The notes under the pieces: generated by a model
Seen by the model: only the letters and a program-made list of their open reading frames with translations
The model's database searches: none
What the model was told of the DNA's origin: nothing
Shown here: one piece after another, positions 1 through 54,914 of the stretch
How positions within the stretch are numbered: the stretch's first letter is position 1
Layout of the letters: the number at the start of each line of letters is the position of its first letter
IMG/VR virus record: IMGVR_UViG_3300024308_000018
Span: 1 to 64,000 of that record
Strand: one strand, 5' to 3'
Length of the DNA: 64,000 bases
Translations under genes and position numbers: made by a program

Positions 1-120
1 AGCGTCGGGGTCTTCCTCTTCAGCGTCGGGGTCTTCCTCTTCAGCGTCGGGGTCTTCCTCTTCAGCGTCGGGGTCTTCCTCTTCAGCGTCGGGGTCTTCT
101 TCAGCGTCGGGGTCTTCTTC
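1..120 (-). repeat. Coding tandem repeat (VNTR): 4 x 21 bp plus 2 x 18 bp, encoding (E)EEDPDA
   Basis: agcgtcggggtcttcctcttc at 1, 22, 43 and 64; agcgtcggggtcttcttc at 85 and 103. Unit lengths are multiples of 3 and in frame with the CDS. Confidence 0.95.
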
Positions 121-20250: not shown

Positions 20251-20265
20251 GATGATCTCCAATGG

Positions 20266-20297
20266 AAAAAGGGTAGCAGGTTGCCCCACTACCCTTT
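20266..20297 (-). terminator. Rho-independent terminator closing the tagged-effector operon
   Basis: Minus strand aaagggtagtgg-ggcaa-cctgctacccttttt. Confidence 0.8.
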
Positions 20298-20305
20298 GTT
20301 TACAG
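20298..20305 (-). promoter_or_regulatory. CTGTAAAC putative promoter element abutting the terminator
   Basis: Exact motif, intergenic, immediately 5' of the hairpin. Confidence 0.6.
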
Positions 20306-20312
20306 ATTTGCG

Positions 20313-22520
20313 TTACATAGTGCCCAGCCCAGAATTGAGCAGCATGCGCACGGCAGCAGGGTTGAAGTCTGCACCGAATCTGTCACGCAATTCCTCTTCG
20401 ATAGTGACGCCATGTTCCTGTGCATCTTCCACCGACTCTTGAACGTTGTACGCTGCTTGCATCAGCGGGAACATTCGGGCCACACGCAAGAACGACGGAA
20501 CGTTGCGGAGAGCTTGCTTCAGCAACGTCAGCATCTTGTTGGCGGTCTTCGGGTCAGCAGCGATTGCATTCATTACCGATCCGAAGGGGCCGCCATTGAA
20601 GTCCTCGGTGTTTGCCAGCGCCATGATACGAACGGGAGCAGCAGAAATCCACGACGTGATTCCAAGCGCGCCCTCAATTTCGCCGCGACCCCCGCTGCCG
20701 TTCAATAGCACGTCGAGACCGATCATTGCCATGGCGGGCTCAGTCCACAGCGCGTCCGGAATAGCATGGAAGAACTCGGGCCCATACTGCGGGCCTGACA
20801 TTGCTCCCTCAAAGGGAAGCATCAGCTTCACCATGAAGTTGCCACGTTTGGTTTCGTCCTTCATGTAATCCGCAATGCGCTTTGCAAGGTACGGACGCAT
20901 AGCGCTGATTGCCGTGTCGTTGGTGTCGTTGGCATACGTGCTATGCACCAGCAACGGCATCAGGTAGCTACCACGGAAAGCAGTCGCCCACTTGTCGGCA
21001 GGCATGCGCTCAATCAGCAGCTTCATCGTTGCTGGGCTGTGCGTACTGCCAGTCGACCGTCCCCTTACAAACTCGTTGTTGGCGGCTTCGACGAACTTCT
21101 TGAACATTGCGGGCATCTTGGTGTCGGGAGCAAGTGCGGCCTCGTAATACGGCGGCAGCTCGTCGACACCTTCATCCGCCCACGTCCGCTTCAAGATTTT
21201 GAGTTCGGCCTTGGTGAGGGTAACGCGGTGCCAGTTGTTGTGCGTGTCGGTCGTCATCAGTGACAACGCCTTCGCCGGAGAGATCCCAAACTTCGGAGCC
21301 GCGTCGAGCAGCGGACGACTGGCTTCCACATCCATCAGCATGGTGTAGAGGCGGGACATTGAAATGTCGCGTTCGGCGCGTACCGTGGAGGCCGCAACCT
21401 TGAACGCGTCAATCTCCGACAGCAGCTTCTGGCCCATCAGAGCGGATACCCGCAGCAGCGCAAGCGCGTCGTGCGTTACGAACGTGCTCGGGTTGTGGCA
21501 ATATCCGCGCGCTGCGATTTCCGCACAGTCCTTATAGGCGAGCGTGACCGCGTTGTCCTCGACGAGGATTCGGATCTTGCGCACGGCGCTCTCGGCCAGC
21601 CGCATATCCATCTCTTTCGAGTTGATCGCGTTGACCAGAGCGTAGAACTCGGACGCATCGGAACCGAACTTGGTCTCGAACATCCCCAACTCTTCCACTA
21701 CGGATTTGGGATTGGCGCGCAGCGACTTTTCCAACTCCTTCAGCGCGGTTGCCGGATCGTAGTTGTCATTGACTACAGTCTTGCGTCCATCGTTGTAGAG
21801 GTCGTCGAGCAGATCCATCGTCATGCCGTAGGGGATGCCGAAGTACGTTGCGTTCACTTCACTGCACCACTTACGCACGGTGTCGAAGAACAGTTGCGAA
21901 CGGGCGCCGTAAATGCCGGACGGGAACAGGCCCTTCTTGCCGTTCTCTGCACGATAGACACGCAGCAAGATACGGGCGCTCGGGCGCTGCAAGTTCAGGT
22001 CGTCTTTGCCCACAAGGTACGCGATGATCGATCCCTGAATGATGTCGTCCTTGACGTACTTGGCGTTGGAGCCGCCGACAAGGTGCATGCAGCTTACCCA
22101 ACCACGATCTGTCGACATGCCCGCCACGTCGTAAGGGTGGCGGGAGATCACGATCATCTGATTGCCTGACGCCGCGTTGCGTGCGTTACTACGCGACTTG
22201 TCGTTGGCGAACACCTTCTGCAACTCCGGCGTCAGCAGCTTACCGATCTTGATGCGACGTTTACCGCTGGCGTCCACGGCGATCCCCGTGATGTAGTCCT
22301 CGACAACGTAACCCTTTTCCGCAACTGACTTCTGGATTGCTTCAGGTACTGGGGCGTAAGCCACACGTTTTGCACCAGCCACTAGCGGCAAGTGGATGCG
22401 GTAGTTATTACGGTCACCAGTGTACTTGCGAAACAGATCGGCGTAGCGTTCTTTGTTCCACCCCTTCACGTACTGTCGGTATTGGCTGGGTTTCAGCGCC
22501 GACGTTGAGATGTTGATCAT
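20313..22520 (-). CDS. Putative internal virion protein (735 aa): conserved N-domain with RGW.SCM motif plus unique C-region
   Basis: The first ~245 aa align with 22524..25169 (SRHPYDVAGMSTDRGW.SCM, IAYLV, ARIL.RV, GLFPSG.YG, KWCSEVN). Begins MINISTSA. Confidence 0.7.
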   Translation of the reverse strand: MINISTSALKPSQYRQYVKGWNKERYADLFRKYTGDRNNYRIHLPLVAGAKRVAYAPVPEAIQKSVAEKGYVVEDYITGIAVDASGKRRIKIGKLLTPELQKVFANDKSRSNARNAASGNQMIVISRHPYDVAGMSTDRGWVSCMHLVGGSNAKYVKDDIIQGSIIAYLVGKDDLNLQRPSARILLRVYRAENGKKGLFPSGIYGARSQLFFDTVRKWCSEVNATYFGIPYGMTMDLLDDLYNDGRKTVVNDNYDPATALKELEKSLRANPKSVVEELGMFETKFGSDASEFYALVNAINSKEMDMRLAESAVRKIRILVEDNAVTLAYKDCAEIAARGYCHNPSTFVTHDALALLRVSALMGQKLLSEIDAFKVAASTVRAERDISMSRLYTMLMDVEASRPLLDAAPKFGISPAKALSLMTTDTHNNWHRVTLTKAELKILKRTWADEGVDELPPYYEAALAPDTKMPAMFKKFVEAANNEFVRGRSTGSTHSPATMKLLIERMPADKWATAFRGSYLMPLLVHSTYANDTNDTAISAMRPYLAKRIADYMKDETKRGNFMVKLMLPFEGAMSGPQYGPEFFHAIPDALWTEPAMAMIGLDVLLNGSGGRGEIEGALGITSWISAAPVRIMALANTEDFNGGPFGSVMNAIAADPKTANKMLTLLKQALRNVPSFLRVARMFPLMQAAYNVQESVEDAQEHGVTIEEELRDRFGADFNPAAVRMLLNSGLGTM

Positions 22521-22523
22521 TGA

Positions 22524-25169
22524 TTACTCCTGTGCCAGTCCAATAAGGGCTGCGGCGTAACGGGTGACGTCAGCCGGATTTGGCTTACGGGGCGAGAGGC
22601 GGCGGCGAAGTCCCGGCTCAATCGCGAGTTCGACACGACGCTGTAGCGAGACGTCTTCTTCGAAGTCTTCCTCTTCGTCAGCCACCAAGCGGTCAATCAT
22701 GCTTTGGATGCCTGCTTTGACTTTGTAGGTAAAGGTCTCGTTACCTATGGCAGCACGCAGCTTAGGCGGCAGCTTCGCCATGAAGGCGGTAACGCCCTCT
22801 TCCAGCTGCTTCCATGCAGGGCTCGCGATAGTGTCGAGCAGCTGGATCGGCAGTAACCGCTCGATGTAGTCGATGCGCCCTTTGTCGTCAAAGTCTTCGC
22901 TATCGAAGATGTAGTGCAGGGCCAGCAGCATCTCCATCTCTGGAGTCCGCCGCTTCGGCAACGCTGCCGTCAGTATCCGAGCAGAGTCAATACCTAGCGC
23001 ATGGTCGCACCCAGTAACGAAAGGAATTGCCACCATCAGATACGGAGCAAGCGGAGATCCCAGCGCCACAATCTGCGTATGCGACAGACCATGATACGAG
23101 ATGTCGACCTCGTTGTTCGGGTCGTGGGAGTTGAACATCTTCTCCATAGTGACCAACGCTGCATCTTCGGTGCTGATACTTGCGATCATTGCCGCGCGCA
23201 TAGTCTTGGACAATTTCTTGAACAGTGCGCTGTTGCCGAAGAGTGGGCTGCTCTTACGTGTGTGCATCAGGCCGCGCTTCTCCCCAGTGTAGAGGGATTC
23301 CGCAACACGAATCAGAATATCACTGCCGAGCAATGCGGGGTCTGAAGGTGCAGCCGCCGTCCATTCTTCAATGAACTTGGCTACGTTGTATCCCTCGCGG
23401 CGGATATGGGCGGCCAGCAACGCAACAGCGATGGAGGTTTTGTTGCCTGCCTTCAGGGTCTCAATCACCGATTCCAGACTCTTGGCGTTTAGGGCGGAGC
23501 GCAAGGTTCCCACAGATCTGCTCATGGGCATGGCGTTCACGCGAGCGAACGCAATAAACTCCGGCTTCGGATTGAACTGGGGAGCGTAGCTAATGCGCAT
23601 ACCGCTGATGTCCACAAGCCCATCCTTACCAACTTGCTTGAGCAGCTGCTTGATCGTAATGCGGCCTCGGCAGTAGTTGGCAAACTGTGCGAGCAGGTAG
23701 TCGTCGGATCCTTCTTCAAAGGACGCTGCAAGTTTCTTTGCATCCTCTTCTTCAAGGTAGAGGCCGAACAGAAGGTCGGCAACATTGGCCCCATCCCGAT
23801 CAGAAAGAGCGTCGACGTATGACGGCTCGTTCGAATAGATGTTCTCACCCTGATACTGCGCTAACTTGAACAGGTCTTTGATGAAGGTGACGACATCATC
23901 TCCGGAGTACGGGCTACTCTTGAAGTGATCGGAGGACAGACTAAACACCAGTGACTCAAAGCCTTTAATCTCCATCCACGTGTTAAACTGCTTGAAGACT
24001 TTGATGTTCGGCTCCCGCTTCGTCGCATTGGTGCGGGCCAGCGAGATCATCTGGGCGATGCAGCTAGTCAGGTACTCACGACTTGCGTCCGGCAGTCGCT
24101 GCACGTTGGTTATCAAGTTCTGGTCGCGCAGATGAATCATAGCACGCGGCACAAACACCGAACGTATGGCTTTCACCGAAGAGGGGTACTTGGCCTCGAA
24201 CACCTTGGCAGATTGAATAACGCTGTCTGCTTGCTTGGCGCTGGCATCGTATGAATTTGGATCAAACCCAGCGGCGCGCGCTTCACGGTCTGCCATGTTG
24301 TCCACGAGAACCACATAGGTATTGCGAAGTACCGCTTCTGAAATTTTGGATGGTGCGGTAGGTGCGTCGAGCAACGTGCGGATATTGGCAGCAGCGGTAT
24401 CCTCTTGCGGCAGGTGCGTCTCACGGGTCGCTGAGTCCGGATACAGCGACGAGAGCATTTTCATGGTCGTGCCGTAGGGGATCTTGAAGAACTTGGAGTT
24501 CACTTCACTGCACCACTTGGAGACCGTTAGGGCAAACGCGTCCGGCGCAGTTCCGTACACTCCTGACGGGAACAGTCCGATCTTGCCCTTGGCCTTGAAC
24601 ACGCGCATCAGGATTCTGGCTTTAGGTGACTGGATATTCAAGTCAGTGGCATCGACAAGATACGCAATGAGCGAGCCTTCTTTGACATCCTTGTTGACGT
24701 AGTGCTTGTTCTGACCGTCGATCAGATTCATGCAGCTAGTCCAGCCACGGTCAGTCGACATGCCAGCAACGTCATAAGGGTGACGCGAAATAACAACGGT
24801 CAGAGCACCAGACTTCTGCTTTGCCGCGCCCCGGCGTTTGTCGTTAGCAAACTCCTGCGCCACGTCGGAAGACTTCAGGATCTTACCGATGCGCACGCGG
24901 CGTTTACCAGTAGCGGAGTCCACGGCATAACCGCCGATGTAATCGTCAACGATGTAGCCAGCAGATTCCACGGCGGCCTTGACTGACGGCAGCGGCTCCA
25001 CTGGCTTTGCATCACGCGCTAAGGTCTTAGCAAGAGGCAGTGAGAAGCGGTATGCTTTAGGATCCGAAGTGTAGGCAGCAAATATGTCTGCGTACCGTCC
25101 CTTATCCCAGCCGCGCACAAACTTGCGATACTGGCTCGGCTTCAACGCCGATGTTGAAATATGAAGCAT
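22524..25169 (-). CDS. Putative internal virion protein (881 aa), paralogue of 20313..22520
   Basis: Same N-domain with an unrelated helical C-region. Begins MLHISTSA. Confidence 0.7.
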   Translation of the reverse strand: MLHISTSALKPSQYRKFVRGWDKGRYADIFAAYTSDPKAYRFSLPLAKTLARDAKPVEPLPSVKAAVESAGYIVDDYIGGYAVDSATGKRRVRIGKILKSSDVAQEFANDKRRGAAKQKSGALTVVISRHPYDVAGMSTDRGWTSCMNLIDGQNKHYVNKDVKEGSLIAYLVDATDLNIQSPKARILMRVFKAKGKIGLFPSGVYGTAPDAFALTVSKWCSEVNSKFFKIPYGTTMKMLSSLYPDSATRETHLPQEDTAAANIRTLLDAPTAPSKISEAVLRNTYVVLVDNMADREARAAGFDPNSYDASAKQADSVIQSAKVFEAKYPSSVKAIRSVFVPRAMIHLRDQNLITNVQRLPDASREYLTSCIAQMISLARTNATKREPNIKVFKQFNTWMEIKGFESLVFSLSSDHFKSSPYSGDDVVTFIKDLFKLAQYQGENIYSNEPSYVDALSDRDGANVADLLFGLYLEEEDAKKLAASFEEGSDDYLLAQFANYCRGRITIKQLLKQVGKDGLVDISGMRISYAPQFNPKPEFIAFARVNAMPMSRSVGTLRSALNAKSLESVIETLKAGNKTSIAVALLAAHIRREGYNVAKFIEEWTAAAPSDPALLGSDILIRVAESLYTGEKRGLMHTRKSSPLFGNSALFKKLSKTMRAAMIASISTEDAALVTMEKMFNSHDPNNEVDISYHGLSHTQIVALGSPLAPYLMVAIPFVTGCDHALGIDSARILTAALPKRRTPEMEMLLALHYIFDSEDFDDKGRIDYIERLLPIQLLDTIASPAWKQLEEGVTAFMAKLPPKLRAAIGNETFTYKVKAGIQSMIDRLVADEEEDFEEDVSLQRRVELAIEPGLRRRLSPRKPNPADVTRYAAALIGLAQE

Positions 25170-25178
25170 GGAATTTCC

Positions 25179-26018
25179 TTACAGCGCGTTCAGGGAGCCG
25201 ATATAGAGAACCTTATACAGCTTGCCAGTGGCCTTGTCGGTGACGACCTTCTCAACCAAGTTGCAATTGACGCCGTGACTGCGGTAGTGAGCAGCAATGT
25301 TGCTCGGACGTGCGACGCCCGTGGCGCTGTACTGAGTTGCACTGCCGAGGTTGATGCCACACACGCGGCACTTGGCGAACCCACGGAACTCAACAGCTTT
25401 GACTGACTTGAAGGCAATGGTCGGTGCCGAGCCCATCATGGCGAACAGGTCAGAGCGCGGAATCGTACCGTATAGGGTCTTGACCTTGCGAGTGACTGGG
25501 CCGTAGGCGAACGGCCAGAACATGAGGTGCGTGCCAGTATCGGTCTTCACTTCCTTGATAGCCAGCAACGCGGTGCCGAGCGCAATCACTTTCTTGGCGA
25601 GCGCCGTGCCATACTTGGCGGTGACTTCGGCGCGCTGCTCCTTGGTCAACTTGGCTGGGGCCTTCGCCTTGAACTTGATTTGCTTGCGCGCCTGTTCAGA
25701 TCCGGCCTTGGGGCCTATGGCCGCGAGCTTGGCTTTCAGCATATCGCCGCGCTTGGAGGCAGTCGTGCTTTGGGTGGAAGTAAGTCGGGCACCTACGCGA
25801 GGGGCGGGAAATTCCAGAAGCATTTTGCCGTCGTGTTTGACGAACACGTGGCCGCCTTGCTGGTCGTAAGTGATCACAACGTTATCGCCAGATGCAGTGT
25901 ACTTGGTGCCTCGCTTGGATGTTTTGATTCCAGACAGGCCAGCACGCTGTGCAATGATGCGCGCGAACAACTCGGGAGGGGTAGGCAGGTTGGCTGAGAT
26001 TGACAGTTGAATTTTCAT
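25179..26018 (-). CDS. Putative internal virion protein with a C-terminal Zn-binding (CxxC...HxxxH) domain
   Basis: Begins MKIQLSISA; basic; contains RG...CRVC...HYRSH. Confidence 0.65.
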   Translation of the reverse strand: MKIQLSISANLPTPPELFARIIAQRAGLSGIKTSKRGTKYTASGDNVVITYDQQGGHVFVKHDGKMLLEFPAPRVGARLTSTQSTTASKRGDMLKAKLAAIGPKAGSEQARKQIKFKAKAPAKLTKEQRAEVTAKYGTALAKKVIALGTALLAIKEVKTDTGTHLMFWPFAYGPVTRKVKTLYGTIPRSDLFAMMGSAPTIAFKSVKAVEFRGFAKCRVCGINLGSATQYSATGVARPSNIAAHYRSHGVNCNLVEKVVTDKATGKLYKVLYIGSLNAL

Positions 26019-26027
26019 GACAGATCC

Positions 26028-26456
26028 TTACCAGTCGTCGGCGACTGCTGGGCTATCTTGGCGGCGACGTTCGTCAAACTTGCGGCGGTCGGCTTCGCGT
26101 CGGTTGATGATGTACTCGGCGTAGTCATGCGCAGTACGCAGACCGAACTTCTTCATCTCAAGCAAGAGACGGTCGAGGCGCGTGCGATCCTTCATCATGC
26201 GAGAGCCCGCAGCACGTGACGCATTCTGGAACGCGGCAGACAGCTGACGTTCGAGGTCTTCGGCGTAACGTAGGTAACCGAGGAATCGCTTGTCGATTCC
26301 CTTGACGTCGTAGATCGCATCGTAGGTGTCGAACTCGGGGTCAGCAGTCAGGCGCAGCACGTGAAGCGCGGAACTCAGAATAGTCTCAAGTCCACGGCCA
26401 CTGTCGCCATACTTTGGGGCGGGTGCCTGTTTGTCCACCGCTTCTTCGATAGACAA
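26028..26456 (-). CDS. Hypothetical protein or orphaned 3' gene fragment
   Basis: Protein-like 142-aa frame with only a TTG start near its 5' end. Overlaps the upstream ORF by 71 nt. Confidence 0.5.
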   Translation of the reverse strand: MSIEEAVDKQAPAPKYGDSGRGLETILSSALHVLRLTADPEFDTYDAIYDVKGIDKRFLGYLRYAEDLERQLSAAFQNASRAAGSRMMKDRTRLDRLLLEMKKFGLRTAHDYAEYIINRREADRRKFDERRRQDSPAVADDW

Positions 26457-26904
26457 GCGGCCCTTCCCTGCCGATCACGTGGTCGTAACCAGCGGCCTTG
26501 AGCATGTCGACGATGCTCTTGTCCTCCATGTACCACGCCCAGACTTTCTTGAACTTGCCAGTGTCCTTTTCAGTCATATCGAACAACTGATCCATTACGT
26601 TGCGATACTGCGCTTTGGTCATAGAGCCGCTGTTCGCTCTGTTATTCACGGCGGTCTTGATGCGGTCGAGTACGTCGGCTCGCTTTACCTCCGTGTCGAA
26701 CGTGCGGAAGCCGAAGTTGAACCCGTGGTTGACGTTCACGGAGAAGCGCATCAGGTGGCGCGGGTCACCAGCGTAACGCATTGCGTACTGACGATCAGTT
26801 GTGAGCCACACGATATGCGAGCGGTCATGAACGGCTTGGTCAAACGCAACTTGCAGGCCACGGTAATAAATCCTGTGGCCCGATAGTGAGAGTTGGATTT
26901 GCAT
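26386..26904 (-). CDS. ADP-ribosyltransferase-like protein (ART-PolyVal-like), possibly C-terminally disrupted
   Basis: YYRG, VWLTT...YA..YA and GYD.V...E motifs parallel those of the upstream ART. Begins MQIQLSLSG. The tail after GREG looks out of frame. Confidence 0.55.
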   Translation of the reverse strand: MQIQLSLSGHRIYYRGLQVAFDQAVHDRSHIVWLTTDRQYAMRYAGDPRHLMRFSVNVNHGFNFGFRTFDTEVKRADVLDRIKTAVNNRANSGSMTKAQYRNVMDQLFDMTEKDTGKFKKVWAWYMEDKSIVDMLKAAGYDHVIGREGPLVYRRSGGQTGTRPKVWRQWPWT

Positions 26905-26913
26905 CTTGGTTCC

Positions 26914-27630
26914 CTAGTCGGTGATGTCGGCAACGCGACGGTAACGTCCACTGTTACCTACAGCGGATTTGATCTGCAACGGAGAGAACACGACGTACAC
27001 GTCGCCTCCCGGTCGCCGGGCAACGACACCATCGTATCCGGTAGCCGCAGCGAAAATCTCTGGGAAGTGTCCAGCGGTAGGCTGCCCCTCGTAGAGGTCG
27101 CTCCACAACATCATCGACGCGTGAATCAGATCGTGTCCGATGTAGTTCTCGGCGTATTCGTGGATACTGCGTTGCATGCCCTGAAATTCCACGTCGTAGT
27201 TGTCGCGGATGAAGCGTTCAAGGTTGCGGCGGCCGAGGCCAGTCAACATCTTGCTTACTTGCGTGCGGGTAATCTTCGGCTGGCGGTAGAAGTCGATGGG
27301 CTTCTTGATGCGCAGGTACACGGGCATGACGTTACTGCTCTCAGGGTCAGTGCCGTCCTTTCCCGTAACGCGGTCAATCTTGTTGCGCGTGTAGGTGTTC
27401 GCCATCTCTGGCGCGCTTGTGAAGTAGTAGCCAATCCCGTACTGGTCAACGCCGGAGCCGATGTACTTGGGGTCGAACTGCTTGAATTCTTTGGGAGTGC
27501 CATGGTAACAACGCAGAGGCGCACCAGACTTGTCGCGAACCACACTTTTGCCGAACCAACGTTCGAACTTTGCAAGTTCTGCGGAGGTCAATGCCGAATA
27601 CGCTTTCGACATTGAAAGTTGGATTTTCAT
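26914..27630 (-). CDS. ADP-ribosyltransferase-like protein (ART-PolyVal family)
   Basis: F..WFG.S.V.D..G.PL..YHGT, G.G.YFT, A..Y, V.PVYL.I..P, GYDG and YVVF.P.QIKSA.GN.G match the ART domain of phage polyvalent proteins. Confidence 0.85.
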   Translation of the reverse strand: MKIQLSMSKAYSALTSAELAKFERWFGKSVVRDKSGAPLRCYHGTPKEFKQFDPKYIGSGVDQYGIGYYFTSAPEMANTYTRNKIDRVTGKDGTDPESSNVMPVYLRIKKPIDFYRQPKITRTQVSKMLTGLGRRNLERFIRDNYDVEFQGMQRSIHEYAENYIGHDLIHASMMLWSDLYEGQPTAGHFPEIFAAATGYDGVVARRPGGDVYVVFSPLQIKSAVGNSGRYRRVADITD

Positions 27631-27655
27631 CGCGATACCTCTTGGTGAATGTAGA

Positions 27656-27666
27656 GCAAAATTAGC
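27656..27666 (-). promoter_or_regulatory. Putative late promoter (GCTAATTTTGC)
   Basis: Just downstream of a terminator and 25 nt before ATG 27630 (GAGG RBS). Confidence 0.6.
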
Positions 27667-27670
27667 GACG

Positions 27671-27707
27671 GAAACGCGAAAGGGGCAGGCAAATGCCCAC
27701 CCCCTTC
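27671..27707 (-). terminator. Rho-independent terminator
   Basis: Minus strand aagggggtgggc-attt-gcctgcccctttc..gtttc. Confidence 0.7.
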
Positions 27708-27729
27708 TACAGGTTGCCTTGTTCGTCGG

Positions 27730-27870
27730 TTAGTGCGACCAGAATTCGCATGCAATACCTGCAAGAGCAACGTGCGTGCTCCTACCGCCGGAAGCGTTGG
27801 AATCTGTCCAACTCAGGTCTAGGTGTGCACCAAGGCTAATGCACGCTAAACAAATCAGGAACCAGATCAC
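27730..27870 (-). CDS. Possible 46-aa hydrophobic peptide
   Basis: GTG overlaps the upstream TGA (GTGA). Reads MIWFLICLACISLGAHLDLSW...EFWSH and fills the gap before the terminator. Confidence 0.4.
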   Translation of the reverse strand: MIWFLICLACISLGAHLDLSWTDSNASGGRSTHVALAGIACEFWSH

Positions 27871-31466: not shown

Positions 31467-33103
31467 CAGAAACTCCTAGACAAAATACTGTTCGCTTGTA
31501 CCTTGTTTACAGATCCTGCGCGCGGCACGTCGTAGATTGCCGAACCGTACTCGTTTTGCAGGTAGGCCCGCGACTTCTCGCTCAACTGGTGGTTGAACTT
31601 CATCGACGCCTGCAACGTTACCTTGAAGCAGCCCACGCTACGTTGCATGTACTTGTCGAGGAACATGCGAATGCGCGGTGTCGGCTTGTCTGGCATTGGC
31701 GTCAGGATCCGATACGACTCCTGCTCCCAGTTTGGCTCGTTCGACATCGGCATGATGTAGTAGAGGGTGTCCCAGCATGGAATGTTGATCCCCAGCTGAA
31801 TCAGACTACGGATACCGATAACGACTTTGATTTTGCCGCTACGTGCATCGTCCACAACCTGCTTCCGCTTCTTGGCTTCCTTGCTGCCGCCCATGAACAA
31901 CGCAACGACGGACGTGTCGTAACCGAGAGCGAAGTCAATCTCGCGCTTCAGCTTGTCGGCATGCTCCTTATACATGATCGGGATACACACCGAGCGTCCG
32001 GCCTTCACGTCCTTCACCGCCATCTCCACAATCTGCATGTTACGGTCTTCATGACGCGCAAGGAACTGGCAGAACTTCGTCCATCCGGCTTGGCCGTTGA
32101 ACTGGGCTTTGGTGCGCACAGTGTCGGGCGTTGGGTGCACAACGATGGTGGGGCACATGGCTTCCGCGCGGGTCGTCGCAATGACGGGCCCGATCAGGTT
32201 GTACGCCAGCACCTCGCGCTTGTTCTTCTTCTTCGGTGTTGCCGAGAGCCCGAACCGTGAGCGCGCTTTCATCTTACCCAGCACCTTGCTGAACTCGGGA
32301 GCACAAGTCCGATGCACTTCGTCGACTGCCAGTGTCCCGTAGTTCATGCGCAACAGCTTCAGGCGCTTGCGGGACATCTCGCTATCTTTGATCAGCTGCT
32401 GGTAGGTGACGAGGATAACTTGGAACGTCTCGTAATCCTTCAGCGTTTTCGGGAACCCGATCAGCTTGGTGCCTGCTTGCTCTTCCAACTCCTTCATGTT
32501 GGTCAGGGCTTCGAACGTTTCGAGGAAGCCGTCGAGAAAGTCCTTCTGATCCGCCATGATGATCGCGCGCTGCTTCATCCGACAGATTGCGGCTACCGCC
32601 ATGACGGTCTTGCCCGTCCGTGGTTTGGATTTCAGGATGCCCATCTTCTTCTTGCAGATGATGCGTACCGGATCCTCTTGGTAGTCAAACAGGTTGCCCG
32701 TGAACTTGAGCGGATAGGTAAACTGGCGCTTCGTGGTCTTGTCCACAAGTTCGAAGTCGTCGAAGTCAATGCCGAGCTTGTACTCAACGTTGTCGATGTC
32801 CCCGAGCGGCGTGGTGTAATACTCATTGCCGCTAACCATCCGGTGGCCCGCCATGCAGAACGTCTGCTTCAGGCCACCCCACTCGCACGCGTAGCAGTCC
32901 TCGCAGGGACGAACGTTGCGCATATCACAGCCACGACAGATGTTGTCGTCGAATTCGCAGTGAGTGTACGCTTTCTTCAGTCGGTCTTCGTCCACGAACC
33001 TGACTGGGATGTAGATCTTGTCGCTCAAGTAGATCTTGGGCATGCGTGGTTTGCGCGTGCTTGCTTTCTTCTTGGGCGCGGGCTTCTTGGATTTCTTTTC
33101 CAC
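31466..33103 (-). CDS. Superfamily 2 DNA helicase (UvsW/XPB-like) with an N-terminal Cys cluster
   Basis: Motifs PRTGKT, DEVH, GLSATP, GINIP and Q...R; CxxC...CxxC..C near the N-terminus. Confidence 0.9.
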   Translation of the reverse strand: MEKKSKKPAPKKKASTRKPRMPKIYLSDKIYIPVRFVDEDRLKKAYTHCEFDDNICRGCDMRNVRPCEDCYACEWGGLKQTFCMAGHRMVSGNEYYTTPLGDIDNVEYKLGIDFDDFELVDKTTKRQFTYPLKFTGNLFDYQEDPVRIICKKKMGILKSKPRTGKTVMAVAAICRMKQRAIIMADQKDFLDGFLETFEALTNMKELEEQAGTKLIGFPKTLKDYETFQVILVTYQQLIKDSEMSRKRLKLLRMNYGTLAVDEVHRTCAPEFSKVLGKMKARSRFGLSATPKKKNKREVLAYNLIGPVIATTRAEAMCPTIVVHPTPDTVRTKAQFNGQAGWTKFCQFLARHEDRNMQIVEMAVKDVKAGRSVCIPIMYKEHADKLKREIDFALGYDTSVVALFMGGSKEAKKRKQVVDDARSGKIKVVIGIRSLIQLGINIPCWDTLYYIMPMSNEPNWEQESYRILTPMPDKPTPRIRMFLDKYMQRSVGCFKVTLQASMKFNHQLSEKSRAYLQNEYGSAIYDVPRAGSVNKVQANSILSRSF

Positions 33104-38746: not shown

Positions 38747-38776
38747 ACGGCCACTCGGTTGAAGTGTTACCAGCTT

Positions 38777-38784
38777 CTTTACAG
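38777..38784 (-). promoter_or_regulatory. CTGTAAAG putative promoter element for the polymerase
   Basis: Between a terminator and ATG 38746. Confidence 0.55.
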
Positions 38785-39330: not shown

Positions 39331-42300
39331 TTACTTCTTGGGCTCGTCGGCGGTGGGGCGCACGCGGATTTCCGAGAGCGTCTTGACCACGGCCTTGAGG
39401 TTGGTAATGGTGTAACCAGCTTTCTGCAACTGGGACAGCACGCGCTTGGCTTCCGTGGGGTTAGCCACGAAGTTGATCGCCATGCTTTCGTGCAGTTTCC
39501 AAGTCGCGTACTTGGCGGTGGCACCGACCGATACCTTGCCGACGAGCTTGCGCGCGTGCGGGTTGGTCTTCAGGTCGATCATCACGCGCATACGGTCACG
39601 CATGAAGGACGGATATGCCTTCAGGATGTTGGGCTTCTGGTTGTCGATGTGGCGCGTGCGGAAGAACTCGATAACTTCGTTCTTCAGTTTGTACGCAACC
39701 GGGTAGAGGAACTTCGAACGGCCAGACTCGCTGAACACGTTCTGGATCTCTTCCAGTCGCTTGGCACTTGCCTTGTCGAACGGGCCTTCACCGAACACTG
39801 AATCCAAGTAATCAAGGTGAGCGTAGAAGTCCTTGATATACAGGGAGTCGGCATAGACGTACTCGCCGAACACTTTGAACCCGAAGCTCTTGACCAGTTC
39901 CTTGTAGTCACTGTCGCTGGTGTTCACGTAGATAGCCAGCAGGCCGTTATACACGGTCGGGTAAACTTCGATGCTCTTGTCGGGAGCGGCAGCGGCAGCT
40001 TTCGGGGTACGCGTGCGCGGAACCTTGTTGCCCGCAACGTCGACGTCCTTGCCAGTAGGCATAACGATCTTGCCTTCGGTGTCGGTGTCGCTGAGTACAG
40101 GCAGACCCGAGTTGATGGCCTTGCCCTCCTTGACGTTCTGCTTGCGAGTACCGCTGGCCTTCGCGCCTTCGGTTGCAACTTCGGCCCCTTCGCGGATCTG
40201 TTTGTCGATGTCGCGTTGGATTGCTTCTTCTTGCTTCCGACGTTTGTCCTCGGCCTTGGTGATTGCATCCTCGACTTCGGAGTCGCGCTTGGTCTTCGGC
40301 ACGGGCTTGACTCCGCCCTTGCTTCCCTTGGCGAACACGCTGCTACGCAGTACCGGATCCTTGATGGCGTTGACCGACACGTGGACACGACCTACCCCGA
40401 CAATGCGCTCACTGCCATCCTGATACTGCACTCGGACGGTGGTGAACGTCGGGTCAGCTTGACGCCGCTCGACGTCTGCGAACTTCTCGTCGTTGACCTT
40501 GCCAATACCGACGATGATACCGTTGCCCCATTCGGTGTGAACCGGAACCCCGTCAAACAACTTGCGGTGCTCTGCCTTGTTGTCGTTGTACGGAACCTTG
40601 GAGCCGCGCGACTTGTAGTAGTCACGGAACGATACCAGACCAAAGCCCCAGCGGTCGTGGATGCGTTGGTTCGGAACATACGGCACGTTGTCCAGCATGC
40701 GATAGCCAGCAGCAGGATCAACAGGCGCACCTTCAATGACGTGCATCGCGGACGCAGTTGACAGGCGCATCTCTGCGAACTCTGCGGCGTCGATAGCACT
40801 CAGGTTTGCCTTGGCGACGAAGTGTTGCAGGCTCTCGTCTTCCGGATCCATGTAGGTGTCGAAGTTGATCCACTTACCAGTCTTATCCAGAATGGTTTCG
40901 GCGTTGTAGGGCGGCTCTTGCATTGCTGCCCACTTCTTCACCTCGTCGTAGCGTGGGTTGCCCGCTTCGTCCCAGATGGTGGTCTTCACATCCTTGGCCG
41001 TCACACGCGCTACCTTCAGCACCTCCATCGTGTTGTTGGTCATCACCCAGTCGATGAAGATTACTTCACGCTTCATGTCACCCGGCTTTCCGTTCTCGTC
41101 GAAGATTGCGGAGTTGAAGTCCGGACGCATGATACGTGCATGCGACTGGCGAACGCGACCCGGTGACCACGGAGTGTCACAGCGGATAATGCGCGAACCG
41201 ATCTGCATGTTGTAGCCTTCAGTGATCCGCTGCTCGTTCGCCACCAGAATGCGGGCTTCAGAGTTGTTGCGGAACTGTTCGACCAGCTCTTTGGTGTCGG
41301 CACCTTTGCCCAGACGGATGGCGTAACGCGCCAGCTTCGGAGCGAGCTTCTTGAGCGACTTGATCACGGAATCGCCGGAGCGGGTGTATTCGCACAGCAC
41401 GATAACCTTGCCCGTGTCTTCCGGTTTCCAGTATTCCAGATCCTTGTCCGGAGTGACGTTGGATTCCGGCAGGCGGAAACGTTGCGGCGTACCCTGCTTC
41501 TGCTTACGTGCCAGATAGCGCTTGCCCTGATACACGCACAGGTCGAGTTCGAACGGACGGCAGCCCGCTTTCCACTCAAACATCTGGTGCATCTGTGCGA
41601 TCTCTTCGCCGTCATCATTGCGCTGCGGCTTGGCAGGCTCGATGAAGTTGGGCTGGACTTCGAAGTGCTTCTTGATCCGCTCGACAATCTTGTGCATCTT
41701 GACGGGGATGAAGTCTTTCACGCCCTGCTCTTTGAAGATCTCGACAGCTTCTGGGTCACCCATCGGGTCAGACAGGATCATTTCCATGCGCTGCCAGTAT
41801 TGGCGCAGCTTCACGGACGACGCAATCATCGAGCCGATAGAGTCAGCCGCTTCTTCCTCTTCTTCGAGCACTGCATCTTCATCAGCCAGCTCGTCGTCTT
41901 CGGATTCCGCGTCCTCGTCTTTCTTGACCGGGCCCTTGCGCTTGATCTCGGCCATCACCTCTTCGACCAACGCAGCGTACACAGCGTCATAGGCAATCTT
42001 GTGCAGGCCGGAGTGCGGCACGCTCGGATCGTCGATGTCGAAGTGCAGGAAGGTCTCGATAGGGTTGGGCAGCATGAACGCCCACTCTTTCCGCTTGTAC
42101 GATGCCATCGTTGCATAGTTGCTGAAGCGACCACGCATTGCGGCAACGCGCTTGTTGAACAGGTCAACAGCGTCCAGAGTTACAGCGCCATCACCGTTGG
42201 AGCGGGAGGCGTCTTCGATGTCCTGACCGTCGCCGAAGATACCCGGCGTGAACATTGCGGCTTGACCAACAACGTCAGACACCTTGTCGGGCACCAGAGT

Positions 42301-45300
42301 ACCGGTAGCCAGACGCTTGAACTTGACAGTGGATTGCAGGAACATCTGCTTGATAGCAGCGTGCACGCCGGAGCCAGAGTTCTTGACGCGGTGCGATTCG
42401 TCGAGGATCACGTAGTTGAACTTGTAGCGACGCAGGAATTCAGTCTGCGCCATGATAGTCACGCGCTCGCCACCGATGTCGGCATCGAAGCGGCCATGGT
42501 GGTTGGCGATGAACGTATCGGCGAACACGAAAATGGTGTTGACCGGAGCGTTGGACAGCAACTCCTGAATGCGCTCAAGGCCGTGCTCTTTCACGGTCTC
42601 GTTGGTGATCGGAACCACGTTCCAGTCGTGAGTGACCAGCAGCAAGTCTTCGCACCAGTTGGCGACCAGACCCTTCGGCGCGATTACCGCAGGTTTAATC
42701 GGCTCGTCCATGATCGACGCACACCACAGAATGTCGTGCAGGCCGAGGATGGTCTTACCGCCACCCGGATGGATGTCGAGCGTCGCGTAGGGCGGCGGCA
42801 CTTTCTTCGACAGCTGAGTCTGCGCCTTGAACTGGTGCGGCATCAGCGTGAAGTCGTGCGTACCTGCAATCTTCAGCGACTCTTCGCTCACGCTATCGTC
42901 AGGCTGGTTGGCCTCAACGTGGGCTTCGACGGCCTCGAAGTAACGGCGGGTGTCGGGAATCGCATGACCGAACATGAACGCGGTCGGCAGCACTGCACGC
43001 ATCAGGAAGCCGGACGGCATCAGGTTGGTTTCGTACAGGGCGCTGAACACTTTCTTCCGGTCGGCGTCGAACACAGCACGCGACATCGCAACCAGCAACG
43101 CACCGCCCAGATAACCACGCAGGTTACCCATGGTATGCAGGCCGGACTTCGACGGGCTGTCGATGAAGCGCCAGTCGTTCACGATCTCAGTGCTTTGACC
43201 CTGACGTTCCCAGAAGCCACGCAGGCGGCCACCGCGATACGAATCACGGGCGTCTTCGATTGCCAGCAGGACGCGGTACATTGCGATCTCGCCATCGTTC
43301 GCCAGACGGCCTTGCGCGGAGTACATGCCAGCGTCGATATAGTTGGCGGGCTCGGCTTCGGGATCGTGCTCCTGAGTGTACGCCATCTGGATCGCTTTCG
43401 CTTGGTTGTTGATTTCCTCGAAGGAGGGAACCAGACCCTTCTGCTGCATCCAGTCGTAGGTGCGGACGATCATGCACGCGGCATAACGCAGCATGTGCGG
43501 GCTACGGGCAGACTTCAGATCGTTCCAGTTGTTATTGTTGTAGCCAGCGTGCGGCACAGCAAACTCGTACTTGGTGCCGATACTAGCGGACATCGCGCTG
43601 ACCACGCGGTCGGTCACAGCACCTACCAGCATCAAGCGCTCGTTGGTTGCGTTGTAGCGCAGGAACTGGCCGAGTACGCGGGAGCCAGTGCGGATGTTCG
43701 GCGCTTCGCCTTCGGCTGCAAAGTTGAAGCCCAAGCTATCACCGATTTCCAGATCGGCAGCGGGTACTGCGCCGCTCTCCTGAATGGAGTCGAAGTTCAG
43801 GAAGTCCGCAGAGGTCTGGATAACCAAACCGGAAGTCGGATCCGTACCAACGACAACGTTGGAGAAGCGGTTGGCCTTGGCGCTGAAGTCGTTGTGCAGC
43901 GACGCGATGTTGACAGTGGTCTCACCGTTGACGCGCTCCAAATCGAGTTCCAGCACCTTGCGGTACTCGGTGCTCAAGTGGCCGACGGGGATGCCGTGCT
44001 CGTACAGAGTGCTCATGCCGTCGGCAAGTGCGGATTCTGCTTTCGCTACGACTTCGAGGTCGATGTCTTGGGTACGCGGGTACACGACCAGCGCGCCGTT
44101 GCTGCTGACTGCTACGCCCTTGTCATCGCCGATGGAGTCGGAGATGGGGAAGCCCAGCTTTTTGCGCATGTCGTTCAGGCGCTTGATCTCGGTGCTCGAA
44201 GTCAGGCAGCGCGGAACGTTGCTGCGGCTACCAGTGCGAGAACCGGACAGGCGGAAGAAGCCTTGGCACCAGCGGTTGAACCAACGAGCAAGCAGCAGCT
44301 CGGCCGCAGAGTGATCGTCGTTCTGGATGATGTAGTCGACCACAGGGTTCGGCAGGTGCAGGGTGTAACCCACGTGCACTACGAAACCGCAGTATGGCAA
44401 CATCGCATCGTGCATGGAAGCCATGCTACCAGCGTTGGTGCTACCGCTCAAGAGCGCGGCGGCGCGGGCGGTGTGTGCTTCAGCCAGTACACGACGCACG
44501 GTGAACTTGAACATCGGGCCGAGGTTAACGCGCACGGGATCAGGCACGAAGCGCGACGGGAAGAACACGGTGTTACCGATGGCTTCCTTGACGCCGGGGA
44601 TTTTCTGCAACGCAGCATTCAGCACGCTGAAGTTGGTGTCGAGATCGAAGTGCACAGTCTTCGACTTCAGGTTGGCCTTGGAGGGCACGTCGCCGAAGAA
44701 GAACTTGTGGAACGCCAGCGCTGCCTTGTGCACCGCTTGCCCGAACTCGGACTGCATGCCGCCGAAGTAGAAGTCACGGAACTCCTTGCTGGCTGATGTG
44801 TCGTCGGGCTTGCCAGACTTCTCGAACTCGGGCGAGCTGCCGTTGTACTGGAAGTAGGGGTCAATACCGGAGCCAACTTCGGAAACCAGCGAGTCGTTGC
44901 GGTAGGTCTGAAACGCGTTCCAGTAACCTTCGTTGGTGCCCGCAATCTTCACAACTTGCAATTCGTAGCCGTCGTTCCCGCGCTTGATTACCAAGTCGCT
45001 GGTGTTCGACATTGCCGCAGTGATCATGCCGCGAGTGGCGGACGTAATCATGGGCGTGCCGCTCTGCATCTTGGCGAGTACGGAGCCGCAGCTGGATTCG
45101 AACACTTGGGAAATCAGGGCAGCCGCACGACCGTTAGTGCCACGCATCTTTTCGAAGATCAGGGTGTTGCTGATCTCGACACTATTACGCATCAGCGCAG
45201 ATAAGAAGGACTGATACAGCTTGATGCGAACGTTCAAGGTGATCAGAGACTCAGCGAACGGGCCGTATTGGTCGGGACGCGGAGTGTTAGCCACGTCGCG

Positions 45301-45480
45301 CGTTGCCTTGGTCAGGCGATCAGGCGGAAACAGCGCATTGGAGAATACGGTTTCGTACTTCGGGTCGAGCGGGCGCGCCGTCAGCTCTGCCCCAATCTGA
45401 GCGCGCAGCTGGCTGGCTACGCCACCCGTTTCCTTGGGCGCTGCCGACTCAGATTGGAAGACGTTGAAGGGATATTGCAT
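39331..45480 (-). CDS. Giant SNF2-like (SF2) helicase/ATPase, 2049 aa
   Basis: Motifs L.PHQ, PGGGKT, P...V.NW, ILDESH..KN, LATGT, EGYNMQ and W.P....Q...RI.R. Preceded by an ~870-aa N-terminal extension beginning MQYPFNVFQSESA. Confidence 0.9.
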   Translation of the reverse strand: MQYPFNVFQSESAAPKETGGVASQLRAQIGAELTARPLDPKYETVFSNALFPPDRLTKATRDVANTPRPDQYGPFAESLITLNVRIKLYQSFLSALMRNSVEISNTLIFEKMRGTNGRAAALISQVFESSCGSVLAKMQSGTPMITSATRGMITAAMSNTSDLVIKRGNDGYELQVVKIAGTNEGYWNAFQTYRNDSLVSEVGSGIDPYFQYNGSSPEFEKSGKPDDTSASKEFRDFYFGGMQSEFGQAVHKAALAFHKFFFGDVPSKANLKSKTVHFDLDTNFSVLNAALQKIPGVKEAIGNTVFFPSRFVPDPVRVNLGPMFKFTVRRVLAEAHTARAAALLSGSTNAGSMASMHDAMLPYCGFVVHVGYTLHLPNPVVDYIIQNDDHSAAELLLARWFNRWCQGFFRLSGSRTGSRSNVPRCLTSSTEIKRLNDMRKKLGFPISDSIGDDKGVAVSSNGALVVYPRTQDIDLEVVAKAESALADGMSTLYEHGIPVGHLSTEYRKVLELDLERVNGETTVNIASLHNDFSAKANRFSNVVVGTDPTSGLVIQTSADFLNFDSIQESGAVPAADLEIGDSLGFNFAAEGEAPNIRTGSRVLGQFLRYNATNERLMLVGAVTDRVVSAMSASIGTKYEFAVPHAGYNNNNWNDLKSARSPHMLRYAACMIVRTYDWMQQKGLVPSFEEINNQAKAIQMAYTQEHDPEAEPANYIDAGMYSAQGRLANDGEIAMYRVLLAIEDARDSYRGGRLRGFWERQGQSTEIVNDWRFIDSPSKSGLHTMGNLRGYLGGALLVAMSRAVFDADRKKVFSALYETNLMPSGFLMRAVLPTAFMFGHAIPDTRRYFEAVEAHVEANQPDDSVSEESLKIAGTHDFTLMPHQFKAQTQLSKKVPPPYATLDIHPGGGKTILGLHDILWCASIMDEPIKPAVIAPKGLVANWCEDLLLVTHDWNVVPITNETVKEHGLERIQELLSNAPVNTIFVFADTFIANHHGRFDADIGGERVTIMAQTEFLRRYKFNYVILDESHRVKNSGSGVHAAIKQMFLQSTVKFKRLATGTLVPDKVSDVVGQAAMFTPGIFGDGQDIEDASRSNGDGAVTLDAVDLFNKRVAAMRGRFSNYATMASYKRKEWAFMLPNPIETFLHFDIDDPSVPHSGLHKIAYDAVYAALVEEVMAEIKRKGPVKKDEDAESEDDELADEDAVLEEEEEAADSIGSMIASSVKLRQYWQRMEMILSDPMGDPEAVEIFKEQGVKDFIPVKMHKIVERIKKHFEVQPNFIEPAKPQRNDDGEEIAQMHQMFEWKAGCRPFELDLCVYQGKRYLARKQKQGTPQRFRLPESNVTPDKDLEYWKPEDTGKVIVLCEYTRSGDSVIKSLKKLAPKLARYAIRLGKGADTKELVEQFRNNSEARILVANEQRITEGYNMQIGSRIIRCDTPWSPGRVRQSHARIMRPDFNSAIFDENGKPGDMKREVIFIDWVMTNNTMEVLKVARVTAKDVKTTIWDEAGNPRYDEVKKWAAMQEPPYNAETILDKTGKWINFDTYMDPEDESLQHFVAKANLSAIDAAEFAEMRLSTASAMHVIEGAPVDPAAGYRMLDNVPYVPNQRIHDRWGFGLVSFRDYYKSRGSKVPYNDNKAEHRKLFDGVPVHTEWGNGIIVGIGKVNDEKFADVERRQADPTFTTVRVQYQDGSERIVGVGRVHVSVNAIKDPVLRSSVFAKGSKGGVKPVPKTKRDSEVEDAITKAEDKRRKQEEAIQRDIDKQIREGAEVATEGAKASGTRKQNVKEGKAINSGLPVLSDTDTEGKIVMPTGKDVDVAGNKVPRTRTPKAAAAAPDKSIEVYPTVYNGLLAIYVNTSDSDYKELVKSFGFKVFGEYVYADSLYIKDFYAHLDYLDSVFGEGPFDKASAKRLEEIQNVFSESGRSKFLYPVAYKLKNEVIEFFRTRHIDNQKPNILKAYPSFMRDRMRVMIDLKTNPHARKLVGKVSVGATAKYATWKLHESMAINFVANPTEAKRVLSQLQKAGYTITNLKAVVKTLSEIRVRPTADEPKK

Positions 45481-52436: not shown

Positions 52437-52487
52437 GTAAATTATTGAGCAAGTCACAGTAGCCTTGCATACACGTTCTGTTTACAG
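52437..52487 (-). promoter_or_regulatory. Tandem putative promoters: CTGTAAAC (52480-52487) and ATAATTTAC (52437-52445)
   Basis: Both recurring motifs occur in one intergenic region downstream of a terminator. Confidence 0.6.
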
Positions 52488-54867: not shown

Positions 54868-54914
54868 AGTAGAAGAGGACGAACACCACTTGGCATCCGT
54901 CCTCTCGTTTACAG
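54868..54914 (-). promoter_or_regulatory. CTGTAAAC motif abutting a terminator-like hairpin
   Basis: CTGTAAAC (54907-54914) followed by gagaggacgga...ttcgtcctcttctacttt. Confidence 0.55.

Follow-up and report, generated by a model that had tools for sequence, protein, structure and literature searches.

The DNA analysed here is a stretch of 64,000 nucleotides (positions 1 to 64,000 of the IMG/VR virus record IMGVR_UViG_3300024308_000018), referred to below as the window, which has a GC content of 55-59% and is coding nearly entirely on the minus strand. It contains a cassette of six minus-strand open reading frames (ORFs) within 20313-27630, with intergenic gaps of 3-9 nt, and five of the six begin with the pattern M-x-[IL]-x-[LI]-S-x-S-[A/G/K]. 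This short leader, the proteins that carry it and its probable role are the subject of the present analysis. A preliminary description of the window had reported a nearly identical short peptide on five of the six ORFs, and both the N-termini and the ORFs were found exactly as described. No near-identical record was found when a phage collection was searched with the window; distant DNA and protein matches grouped it with the 'Lupandier' jumbo phages, which comprise Lu11, PaBG, NCTB, Dickeya JA11/JA29, Erwinia Alexandra, Yoloswag and Y3, and in which about 70% of the genes are orphans (PMC7412058). The relative loci compared, metagenomic contigs included, are labelled L followed by a number. 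The closest relative with context was the Logan contig L014, whose orthologue of the last cassette gene, g735, is 87% identical.

The first gene of the cassette, g238 (26914-27630, minus strand, as are all those that follow), carries the leader MKIQLSMS/K at 27607-27630, the slash marking the putative cut here and below, followed by an ART-PolyVal ADP-ribosyltransferase (ART) domain (Pfam PF18760, E=3.6e-24, 86.6 bits against a gathering cutoff of 31.2). In g172 (26386-26904) the leader MQIQLSLS/G precedes a small domain, and the gene is truncated at its 3' end; g142 (26028-26456) is a 3' remnant, a pseudogene fragment in which an own start codon and leader are absent. The leader MKIQLSIS/A of g279 (25179-26018) is followed by a protein with a CxxC-x23-HxxxH motif. 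The two largest genes are g881 (22524-25169), with the leader MLHISTS/A, an N-domain of about 250 residues starting at 'ALKPSQYR' and a variable C-terminal region, and its paralogue g735 (20313-22520), with the leader MINISTS/A and a different C-terminal region; the two are 56% identical over residues 1-248, as expected of the pair of large paralogues described earlier. The leaders measure 6-10 residues in total (one of 15) and typically 7-9. Their codons vary synonymously from gene to gene (Leu CTT/CTC/CTG, Ile ATC/ATT, Ser TCG/TCA), and the DNA upstream of them is unrelated between genes.

Two of the bodies had been described as ART-like. This holds for g238; for g172 it is not supported, since Pfam and BLASTP were negative and hhalign against the ART group gave a probability of 3.6%, and PHROG likewise returned no match. 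The sole hint is that Lu11_0205, which can be aligned with g172, has a sub-threshold ART-PolyVal match; the motif order of g172 also resembles that of short ART-like proteins (alignment A3), without significance. No family match was obtained for g279 in Pfam and PHROG searches. The zinc-binding character proposed for it is supported by the conserved motif, whose residues C217, C220, H244 and H248 are invariant in three homologues and form a putative Zn site. The AlphaFold2 (AF2) model of g881 has a mean predicted local distance difference test score (pLDDT) of 89, with leader residues 1-5 disordered. Comparison of the g881 N-domain with PDB structures gave no significant match, the weak top matches being to GNAT folds; a PcfJ-like hint is equally weak. 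Orthologues of g735 were collected as P0001-P0007. Many members of the 'ALKPSQYR' family (P0027-P0120) have DUF4116 (PF13475) repeats on the C-terminal side, whereas the two window copies end in unrelated sequence; the N-domain thus resembles a conserved head attached to variable tails.

The cassette is bordered upstream by an intergenic region of 236 nt (27631-27866, minus strand), which is 91% identical to L014, compared with 73-78% for the flanking coding DNA. It includes a strong hairpin with a U-rich tail at about 27678-27707, which resembles a terminator of the upstream exonuclease gene, and a conserved block, GCTAATTTTGCTCTACAT, at 27649-27666. The latter holds the TAATTT motif previously pointed out upstream of g238, which has no second copy in the window and is conserved in L014. 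As a recurrent promoter TAATTT was rejected because of this uniqueness; a shorter form, CTAATTTT, has two occurrences, not a significant number. Searches of the region against Rfam and for tRNAs gave no match. The region has several hairpins, with a folding z-score of only -1.5, and could act as a regulatory element or encode a small RNA. The downstream boundary (20251-20312, minus strand) contains a GGGTAG/CTACCC hairpin followed by T5 at 20266-20294, with a 6-bp stem and a 12-nt loop, and the next gene, g388, starts at 20250. The feature described there as a terminator is thus a real hairpin plus T5, conserved in L014, and it overlaps the promoter-like CTGTAAACA (20297-20305) of the next gene. 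A scan for sigma-70 promoters and terminators gave nothing useful at the cassette borders, the hairpin at 20266-20294 having been missed because of its 12-nt loop. The annotated middle/late promoter consensus of Lu11 is CTGTAAATA (CTGTAAAYA). Exact intergenic copies of CTGTAAACA, which fits this consensus, lie on the minus strand at 1505-1513, 20297-20305, 31504-31512 and 52479-52487, 30-70 nt upstream of starts that include those of a tagged gene with a KMPT-N domain, described below, and of g388; their overall count is not above chance. Copies with one mismatch precede the DNA polymerase gene (at 38776-38784) and the gene starting at 54896. That the cassette is a self-contained operon is plausible.

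The comparison with L014 accounts for the sixth ORF, which had been suspected of lacking its true 5' end. All 142 residues of g142 align to L014:8706-9125, which encodes the C-terminal 140 residues of a 310-residue tagged protein starting MKVFLSLSA. By tblastn, the homology of g172 to Alexandra_199 and L014 ends at residue 148 (about 26460). The intervening 2.7 kb (L014:5977-8705) are absent from the window, and since the two sides of the deletion are joined out of frame, the final 24 codons of g172 are not native. g142 is thus the remnant of a 2.7-kb deletion, the endpoints of which do not lie at leaders. Judged by the content of L014, what was lost comprises the 3' end of g172, the first 170 or so codons of the 310-residue gene and, between them, three genes: a short ART-like one, a NUDIX one and an untagged one.

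The L014 cassette has the same borders as that of the window and a different content. Its first gene encodes an ART-PolyVal protein (MKIELSVSK), the 77% identical orthologue of g238, and its second the orthologue of g172 (MHIMLSLSS). Genes three to six encode a 149-residue protein (MRIQLSISA), a 301-residue NUDIX protein (MEIQLSLSD), an untagged 171-residue protein and the 310-residue protein (MKVFLSLSA); they are followed by the orthologues of g279 (MKVQLSLSA) and g735 in positions seven and eight. Seven L014 genes carry an M.I.LS.S leader, and a counterpart of g881 was not found at the cassette position in L014. In L015, MKIIIS[KRA]S occurs on nine genes, including two ART-PolyVal and two 'ALKPSQYR' genes. 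The locus is a hot spot at which leader and borders are kept while the cargo is exchanged, for instance for NUDIX or a second ART, and the cassette may be described as a rapidly renewed arsenal.

Distribution of the leader in the window and in related phages

Enrichment of the motif at N-termini was checked against its internal rate. S-x-S-[AGK] within the first 15 residues was found in 9 of 59 minus-strand genes of the window, where the internal rate predicts 1.03 (binomial 8e-7); among control windows placed after internal Met residues, 3 of 505 matched. Two of the nine, g388 and g271, are probably coincidental as tagged genes, since their motifs are not kept in orthologues, and g881 and g735 count as one event because they are paralogues; this leaves six independent cases against about one expected. 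A tag-like N-terminus, MLHAISTSDWH, was also seen on an SbcD/Mre11-like nuclease (53311-54357). It is probably metallophosphoesterase motif I and advises caution against calls made on the pattern only.

The tag had been presented as a mark of this operon. It does mark the five cassette ORFs, and it is not restricted to them, since at least two other genes of the window carry it. One is the KMPT-N gene (1-1473, minus strand), cut by the window end, with the leader MQLSISSIASTS/A, the N-terminus MQLSISSIASTSA, a KMPT-N domain (Pfam PF20294, E=9e-9) and CTGTAAACA upstream at 1505-1513. The other (39331-45480, minus strand) encodes a 2049-residue helicase-like protein (PHROG DNA helicase) with S-E-S/A at residues 10-13 (QSES/A). 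The N-terminal 230 or so residues of this protein are unconserved except for the small-x-small motif, and tblastn with its N-terminal 400 residues as query gave no match.

Among the relatives the leader was recognised in Lu11, PaBG, Dickeya JA29, Erwinia Alexandra and metagenomic contigs, on cargo that includes ART-PolyVal, NUDIX, KMPT-N/SprT-like, DarA_C and topoisomerase I proteins and the helicase-like protein of about 2000 residues. The same short leader thus stands on otherwise unrelated proteins of one phage, in the window as in its relatives, and each genome has a flavour of its own, S-x-S in the window and A-x-A in Lu11. At least 11 consecutive genes of Lu11 start with MKIQLAVA or MKIQLA.A, and the motif is found also on the topoisomerase I-like Lu11_0197, on Lu11_0068, which adjoins the head module, and on the KMPT-N protein Lu11_0077 (MIISLAAA/A). 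In JA29 and Alexandra the leader reads M-x-Φ-x-V-S-Φ-S-A (Φ, hydrophobic), and a longer form ends in S-x-S-A. The PaBG leaders are MHTSLS/A on topoisomerase I, MELAIA/S on PaBG_00089, with KMPT-N and SprT-like domains, and MLIKINLLEAVA/A on gp83. Lu11_0077 and PaBG_00089 are likened to the KMPT-N gene of the window by domain and leader and not by direct sequence comparison. The helicase-like orthologues carry a motif matched to the genome in all four cases, namely QSES/A in the window, MQIFSTS/A in JA29_166, NSLS/A in PaBG gp202 and PLAAA/V in Lu11_0099.

A loose form of the leader pattern, counted over 12 loci, was present at 69 of 282 gene starts, compared with 94 of 1670 windows after internal Met (odds ratio 5.4, P=5e-20). 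In loci anchored on the head protease treated in the next section, tagged genes are abundant beside the protease/scaffold/capsid module, and S-x-S is kept in L027 and L028 though their protease is only 38-43% identical. The same leader peptides occur in loci with a GC content of 0.35-0.57, which indicates selection on the peptide and not on the DNA. The tagged topoisomerase I-like proteins are Lu11_0197 (L009:4604-6289, MNVHIAVA/A) and PaBG_00084 (L012:1210-2898, MHTSLS/A); such a tag, if correctly read, implies a virion-packaged topoisomerase. JA29_133 (L016:2000-3103), whose gene neighbours that of the JA29 head protease, contains KMPT-N together with a weak SpvD-like match, and its annotated start is without leader.

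The family defined by the N-domain of g881 and g735 comprises 331 proteins, and the leaders of its best 120 members were classified by the residues that precede the conserved 'ALKPSQYR..GWDK'. In 42 of these 120 the leader has 7-9 residues and ends in Φ-S-x-S (one in A-x-S), and in 70 it has 8-10 residues and ends in [I/L]-x-E, the established cleavage consensus of the T4 prohead protease. Both types stop at the identical residue, directly before 'ALKPSQYR'. The Glu-type members that could be placed belong to T4-like phages, that is Atu_ph07, which has a gp21 homologue (gp204), RsoM2USA, which has a prohead core protease, and the 332-kb contig L035, which has a T4 gp13 and a sheath gene and where a neighbouring gene starts MKKFEQFLAE. 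The same-junction exchange therefore suggests that this cargo family wears the leader suited to the resident head protease, and it may be viewed as a natural experiment on cargo moving between phages with different proteases. At the residue preceding the putative cut (position P1), the five cassette leaders and all 42 S-type leaders have Ser, whereas Lu11 has Ala. A specificity differing from that of the Glu-specific T4 and phiKZ proteases had been anticipated, and with a putative Ser or Ala at this position, and not Glu, the leaders are consistent with it.

Virion proteins, capsid protein and head protease

Three proteins of relatives connect the leader with the virion. The homologue of the g881/g735 family in Atu_ph07, gp394 (1455 nt; leader MQYTDLIE/ALKPSEYR), was identified in the virion proteome by 18 unique peptides with 41% coverage, and PaBG gp83 (MLIKINLLEAVA/A) and gp202 (NSLS/A, 221 kDa) are among the 14 virion bands of that phage. 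It may be noted that gp202, a virion component, is the orthologue of the 2049-residue protein of the window, which suggests that the latter could be a giant packaged enzyme.

The capsid protein provides a further indication. The authors of the PaBG study report that maturation of this protein reduces its mass by about 20%. When 11 capsid proteins were aligned, a poorly conserved linker at about residues 65-80 was found always to keep a small-x-small motif of the flavour of its genome, that is I/V-A-T-A or I-A-V-A in Lu11-type genomes (Lu11, L019, L025), and V-S-E-S, S-V-S/A and S-T-S/A in JA29, Yoloswag and SNUABM_35. A cut at this linker would remove about 70-80 of some 365 residues, approximately 20%, which matches the loss in PaBG. 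In the window, g433 (51108-52409) was tried as the capsid protein and rejected, as it has no PaBG or Lu11 match; the true capsid gene lies outside.

The candidate protease belongs to PHROG 18299, annotated 'head maturation protease', whose members include JA29_134, phiRSL1 ORF132 and Lu11_0071. The genes of this family stand upstream of those for an acidic scaffold-like protein and the capsid protein, and in the phage studied here the gene is outside the window. The residues invariant in L018-L029 (alignment A1) would suit a Ser/His protease into which a Zn ribbon is inserted; among them are an EH motif, NT.S.G and CSIC..C.HT. The N-termini of the proteases carry the motif themselves (ELALG/F in Lu11, MKKELSLS/F in L025), and self-processing is thereby suggested. 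The PaBG gp82-like 'ATPase' was also considered as protease and discarded, since only an acidic stretch was found.

Interpretation and alternative explanations

The leader is probably a capsid-targeting propeptide which is removed by the PHROG 18299 protease, so that the cargo is borne in the head and most likely ejected. A capsid-addressing S-x-S-[A/G] leader served by a protease that is not Glu-specific had been put forward in the preliminary description, and that proposal gains strong comparative support from the portability of the leader, its genome-matched flavour, the exchange at the same junction, the virion proteins of relatives and the capsid motif. According to this model the leader, made of Met, alternating hydrophobic residues and Ser-x-Ser in 7-9 residues, would direct the cargo into the assembling prohead, and the protease would cut after the second small residue, S-x-S/A in the window and A-x-A/x in Lu11. 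The cargo would then travel in the head with the DNA, would most likely be ejected and would act on host or defence targets. The set delivered by the window phage would consist of the ART-PolyVal ADP-ribosyltransferase, the putative Zn protein, the two proteins with the 'ALKPSQYR' domain and a small protein of no assigned function. The cargo repertoire (ART-PolyVal, KMPT-N, SprT-like, DarA_C, NUDIX), known also from injected polyvalent proteins and from P1 Dar, supports, by analogy and without proving it, a role as host-directed effectors.

Several observations weigh against this interpretation. Presence in the virion is known from relatives (Atu_ph07, PaBG) and not from the window phage, and no homologue of g881 was detectable in PaBG. 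Two candidate sites emerge from the capsid alignment, both of them a poor fit for L022. The PHROG 18299 protease had no match among Pfam families and PDB sequences, which leaves the family unplaced; its AF2 model, built on a shallow alignment, reached a pLDDT of 54, and its best template modelling (TM) score, 0.42 with T4 gp21 (5jbl; E about 1), is not significant. Upstream of g238 neither a CTGTAAACA-type nor another recognised late promoter was found. The SLSA of g388 (start 20250, MRTLFRSLSA) is absent from its 56%-identical L014 orthologue, as is the motif of g271 (start 8188, MPISMSA) from Lu11_0188. Finally, cleavage at the motif, the position of the cut and the protease responsible are points that we infer from sequence, and we infer likewise ejection and action in the host.

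The leader might instead be a docking signal only, bound by scaffold, portal or inner core and retained, in which case the small-x-small motif would be a binding epitope and not a scissile site. The alternating hydrophobic residues do resemble a β-strand able to extend the sheet of a partner, cleavage is itself a deduction, and Atu_ph07 gp394 is recorded at its predicted 55.1 kDa, where a gel would not reveal a loss of about 1 kDa. However, T4-like relatives have, at the junction in question, a leader that terminates in the classical [I/L]-x-E cleavage motif, and the small-x-small motif recurs inside capsid proteins from which about 20% is removed and at the N-termini of the proteases, so that docking without cleavage is considered unlikely. 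That the tagged proteins are processed head-internal assembly proteins (scaffold, inner body or DNA-organising), for which ejection would be unnecessary, is rather improbable. The vicinity of tagged genes to the head module is in line with such a role, as is the lack of an enzymatic signature in g279 and in the C-terminal regions of g881 and g735, but ART-PolyVal, NUDIX, SprT-like/KMPT-N, DarA_C and topoisomerase are enzymes or counter-defence modules, and the rapid turnover of cargo between close relatives is typical of arms-race genes and not of assembly parts.

A nucleic-acid feature at the shared 5' end, such as a translation-initiation enhancer or a recombination site, with the peptide being incidental, could be imagined from the tight packing of the genes, which makes translational coupling possible, and from the gain and loss of genes in the cassette. 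It is made very improbable by the synonymous leader codons, by the unrelated upstream DNA and by the recurrence of the same peptide at 35-57% GC; moreover, the motif is also internal in capsid proteins and lies 10-13 residues from the start in the gp202 orthologues, and the deletion endpoints are away from the leaders. A secretion or lipoprotein signal cut by signal peptidase is hardly credible. Signal peptidase I sites have small residues at -3 and -1 (an Ala-x-Ala-like rule), which the small residues of the leader do resemble, but with only 7-9 residues the leaders have no extended hydrophobic core, where a Sec-type signal peptide would have one of at least about 10 residues before small-x-small, and the cargo consists of cytoplasmic-type enzymes whose relatives are found inside virions.

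With the capsid-targeting propeptide as the preferred explanation, it is tempting to speculate further on the whole clade that has the PHROG 18299 protease (Lu11, PaBG, the Dickeya/Erwinia 'Lupandier' phages and metagenomic relatives). In these phages an S-x-S/A-x-A zip code may be both necessary and sufficient for capsid loading and may have diverged with each protease; the tagged genes might then be the complete set of injected effectors, and the cassette would correspond to a polyvalent protein broken into exchangeable, separately addressed modules. We regard this extended proposal as having slightly less than an even chance of being correct. If the propeptide reading is true, the leader would be a sequence-only handle for listing the packaged or injected proteins of poorly understood jumbo phages, and head-protease specificity would extend outside the Glu rule of T4-like and phiKZ-like phages. 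It would also explain how ART, NUDIX, SprT-like, DarA_C, topoisomerase I and a 220-kDa helicase-like protein enter together with the DNA, and foreign proteins could be loaded into large capsids by means of a short tag.

Comparison with known systems

In T4, short leaders of about 10 residues on the internal proteins and on Alt are cut by the prohead protease gp21, and the cargo is packaged and injected. The cassette shares with this system a short N-terminal leader on unrelated proteins, an ADP-ribosyltransferase among them, and leaders of the [I/L]-x-E type occur on g881/g735 family proteins of T4-like jumbo phages. It differs in the putative P1 residue, Ser or Ala in the window group and not Glu, and in the hypervariable multi-gene cassette; the PHROG 18299 protease, with its presumed Zn-ribbon insert, has no detectable sequence match to gp21. 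The herpesvirus assemblin, a capsid maturation serine protease, cuts Ala/Ser; it is mentioned as an analogy in small-residue specificity only, and homology to PHROG 18299 is not claimed. In the Dar system of phage P1, accessory antirestriction proteins are incorporated into heads and protect the incoming DNA. The tagged protein of locus L028 carries DarA_C, whereas Pfam and PHROG searches found no Dar-family domain in the window cassette, and the incorporation hierarchy of P1 is not known to use such a leader.

In phiKZ and SPN3US, many head-internal proteins are processed by one protease at S/A/G-x-E and A-x-E sites (PMC5694885, PMC10052503). These are likewise jumbo phages with a short consensus site on many head-internal proteins. 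In contrast, Glu is the last residue of their sites and their propeptides are frequently long, whereas the leader in the window is a uniform 7-9 residues with a small-residue end; the 'Lupandier' lineage (PMC7412058) is unrelated to them. For polyvalent proteins, delivery together with the DNA has been predicted (PMC7824862, citing Iyer et al. 2017), and their domain vocabulary, ART-PolyVal, KMPT-N, SprT-like/zincin, NUDIX and helicase, recurs among the tagged proteins. Only this repertoire is shared. Polyvalent fusions are single giant polypeptides, whereas the cargo domains of the cassette stand on separate ORFs of 172-881 residues, each with a leader of its own. A search of the literature for papers on an S-x-S leader or on a protease of such specificity found none. 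What is known is thus the principle of T4- or phiKZ-style capsid-targeting propeptides; what would be new here is the small-residue specificity, the different protease family and the hypervariable cassette.

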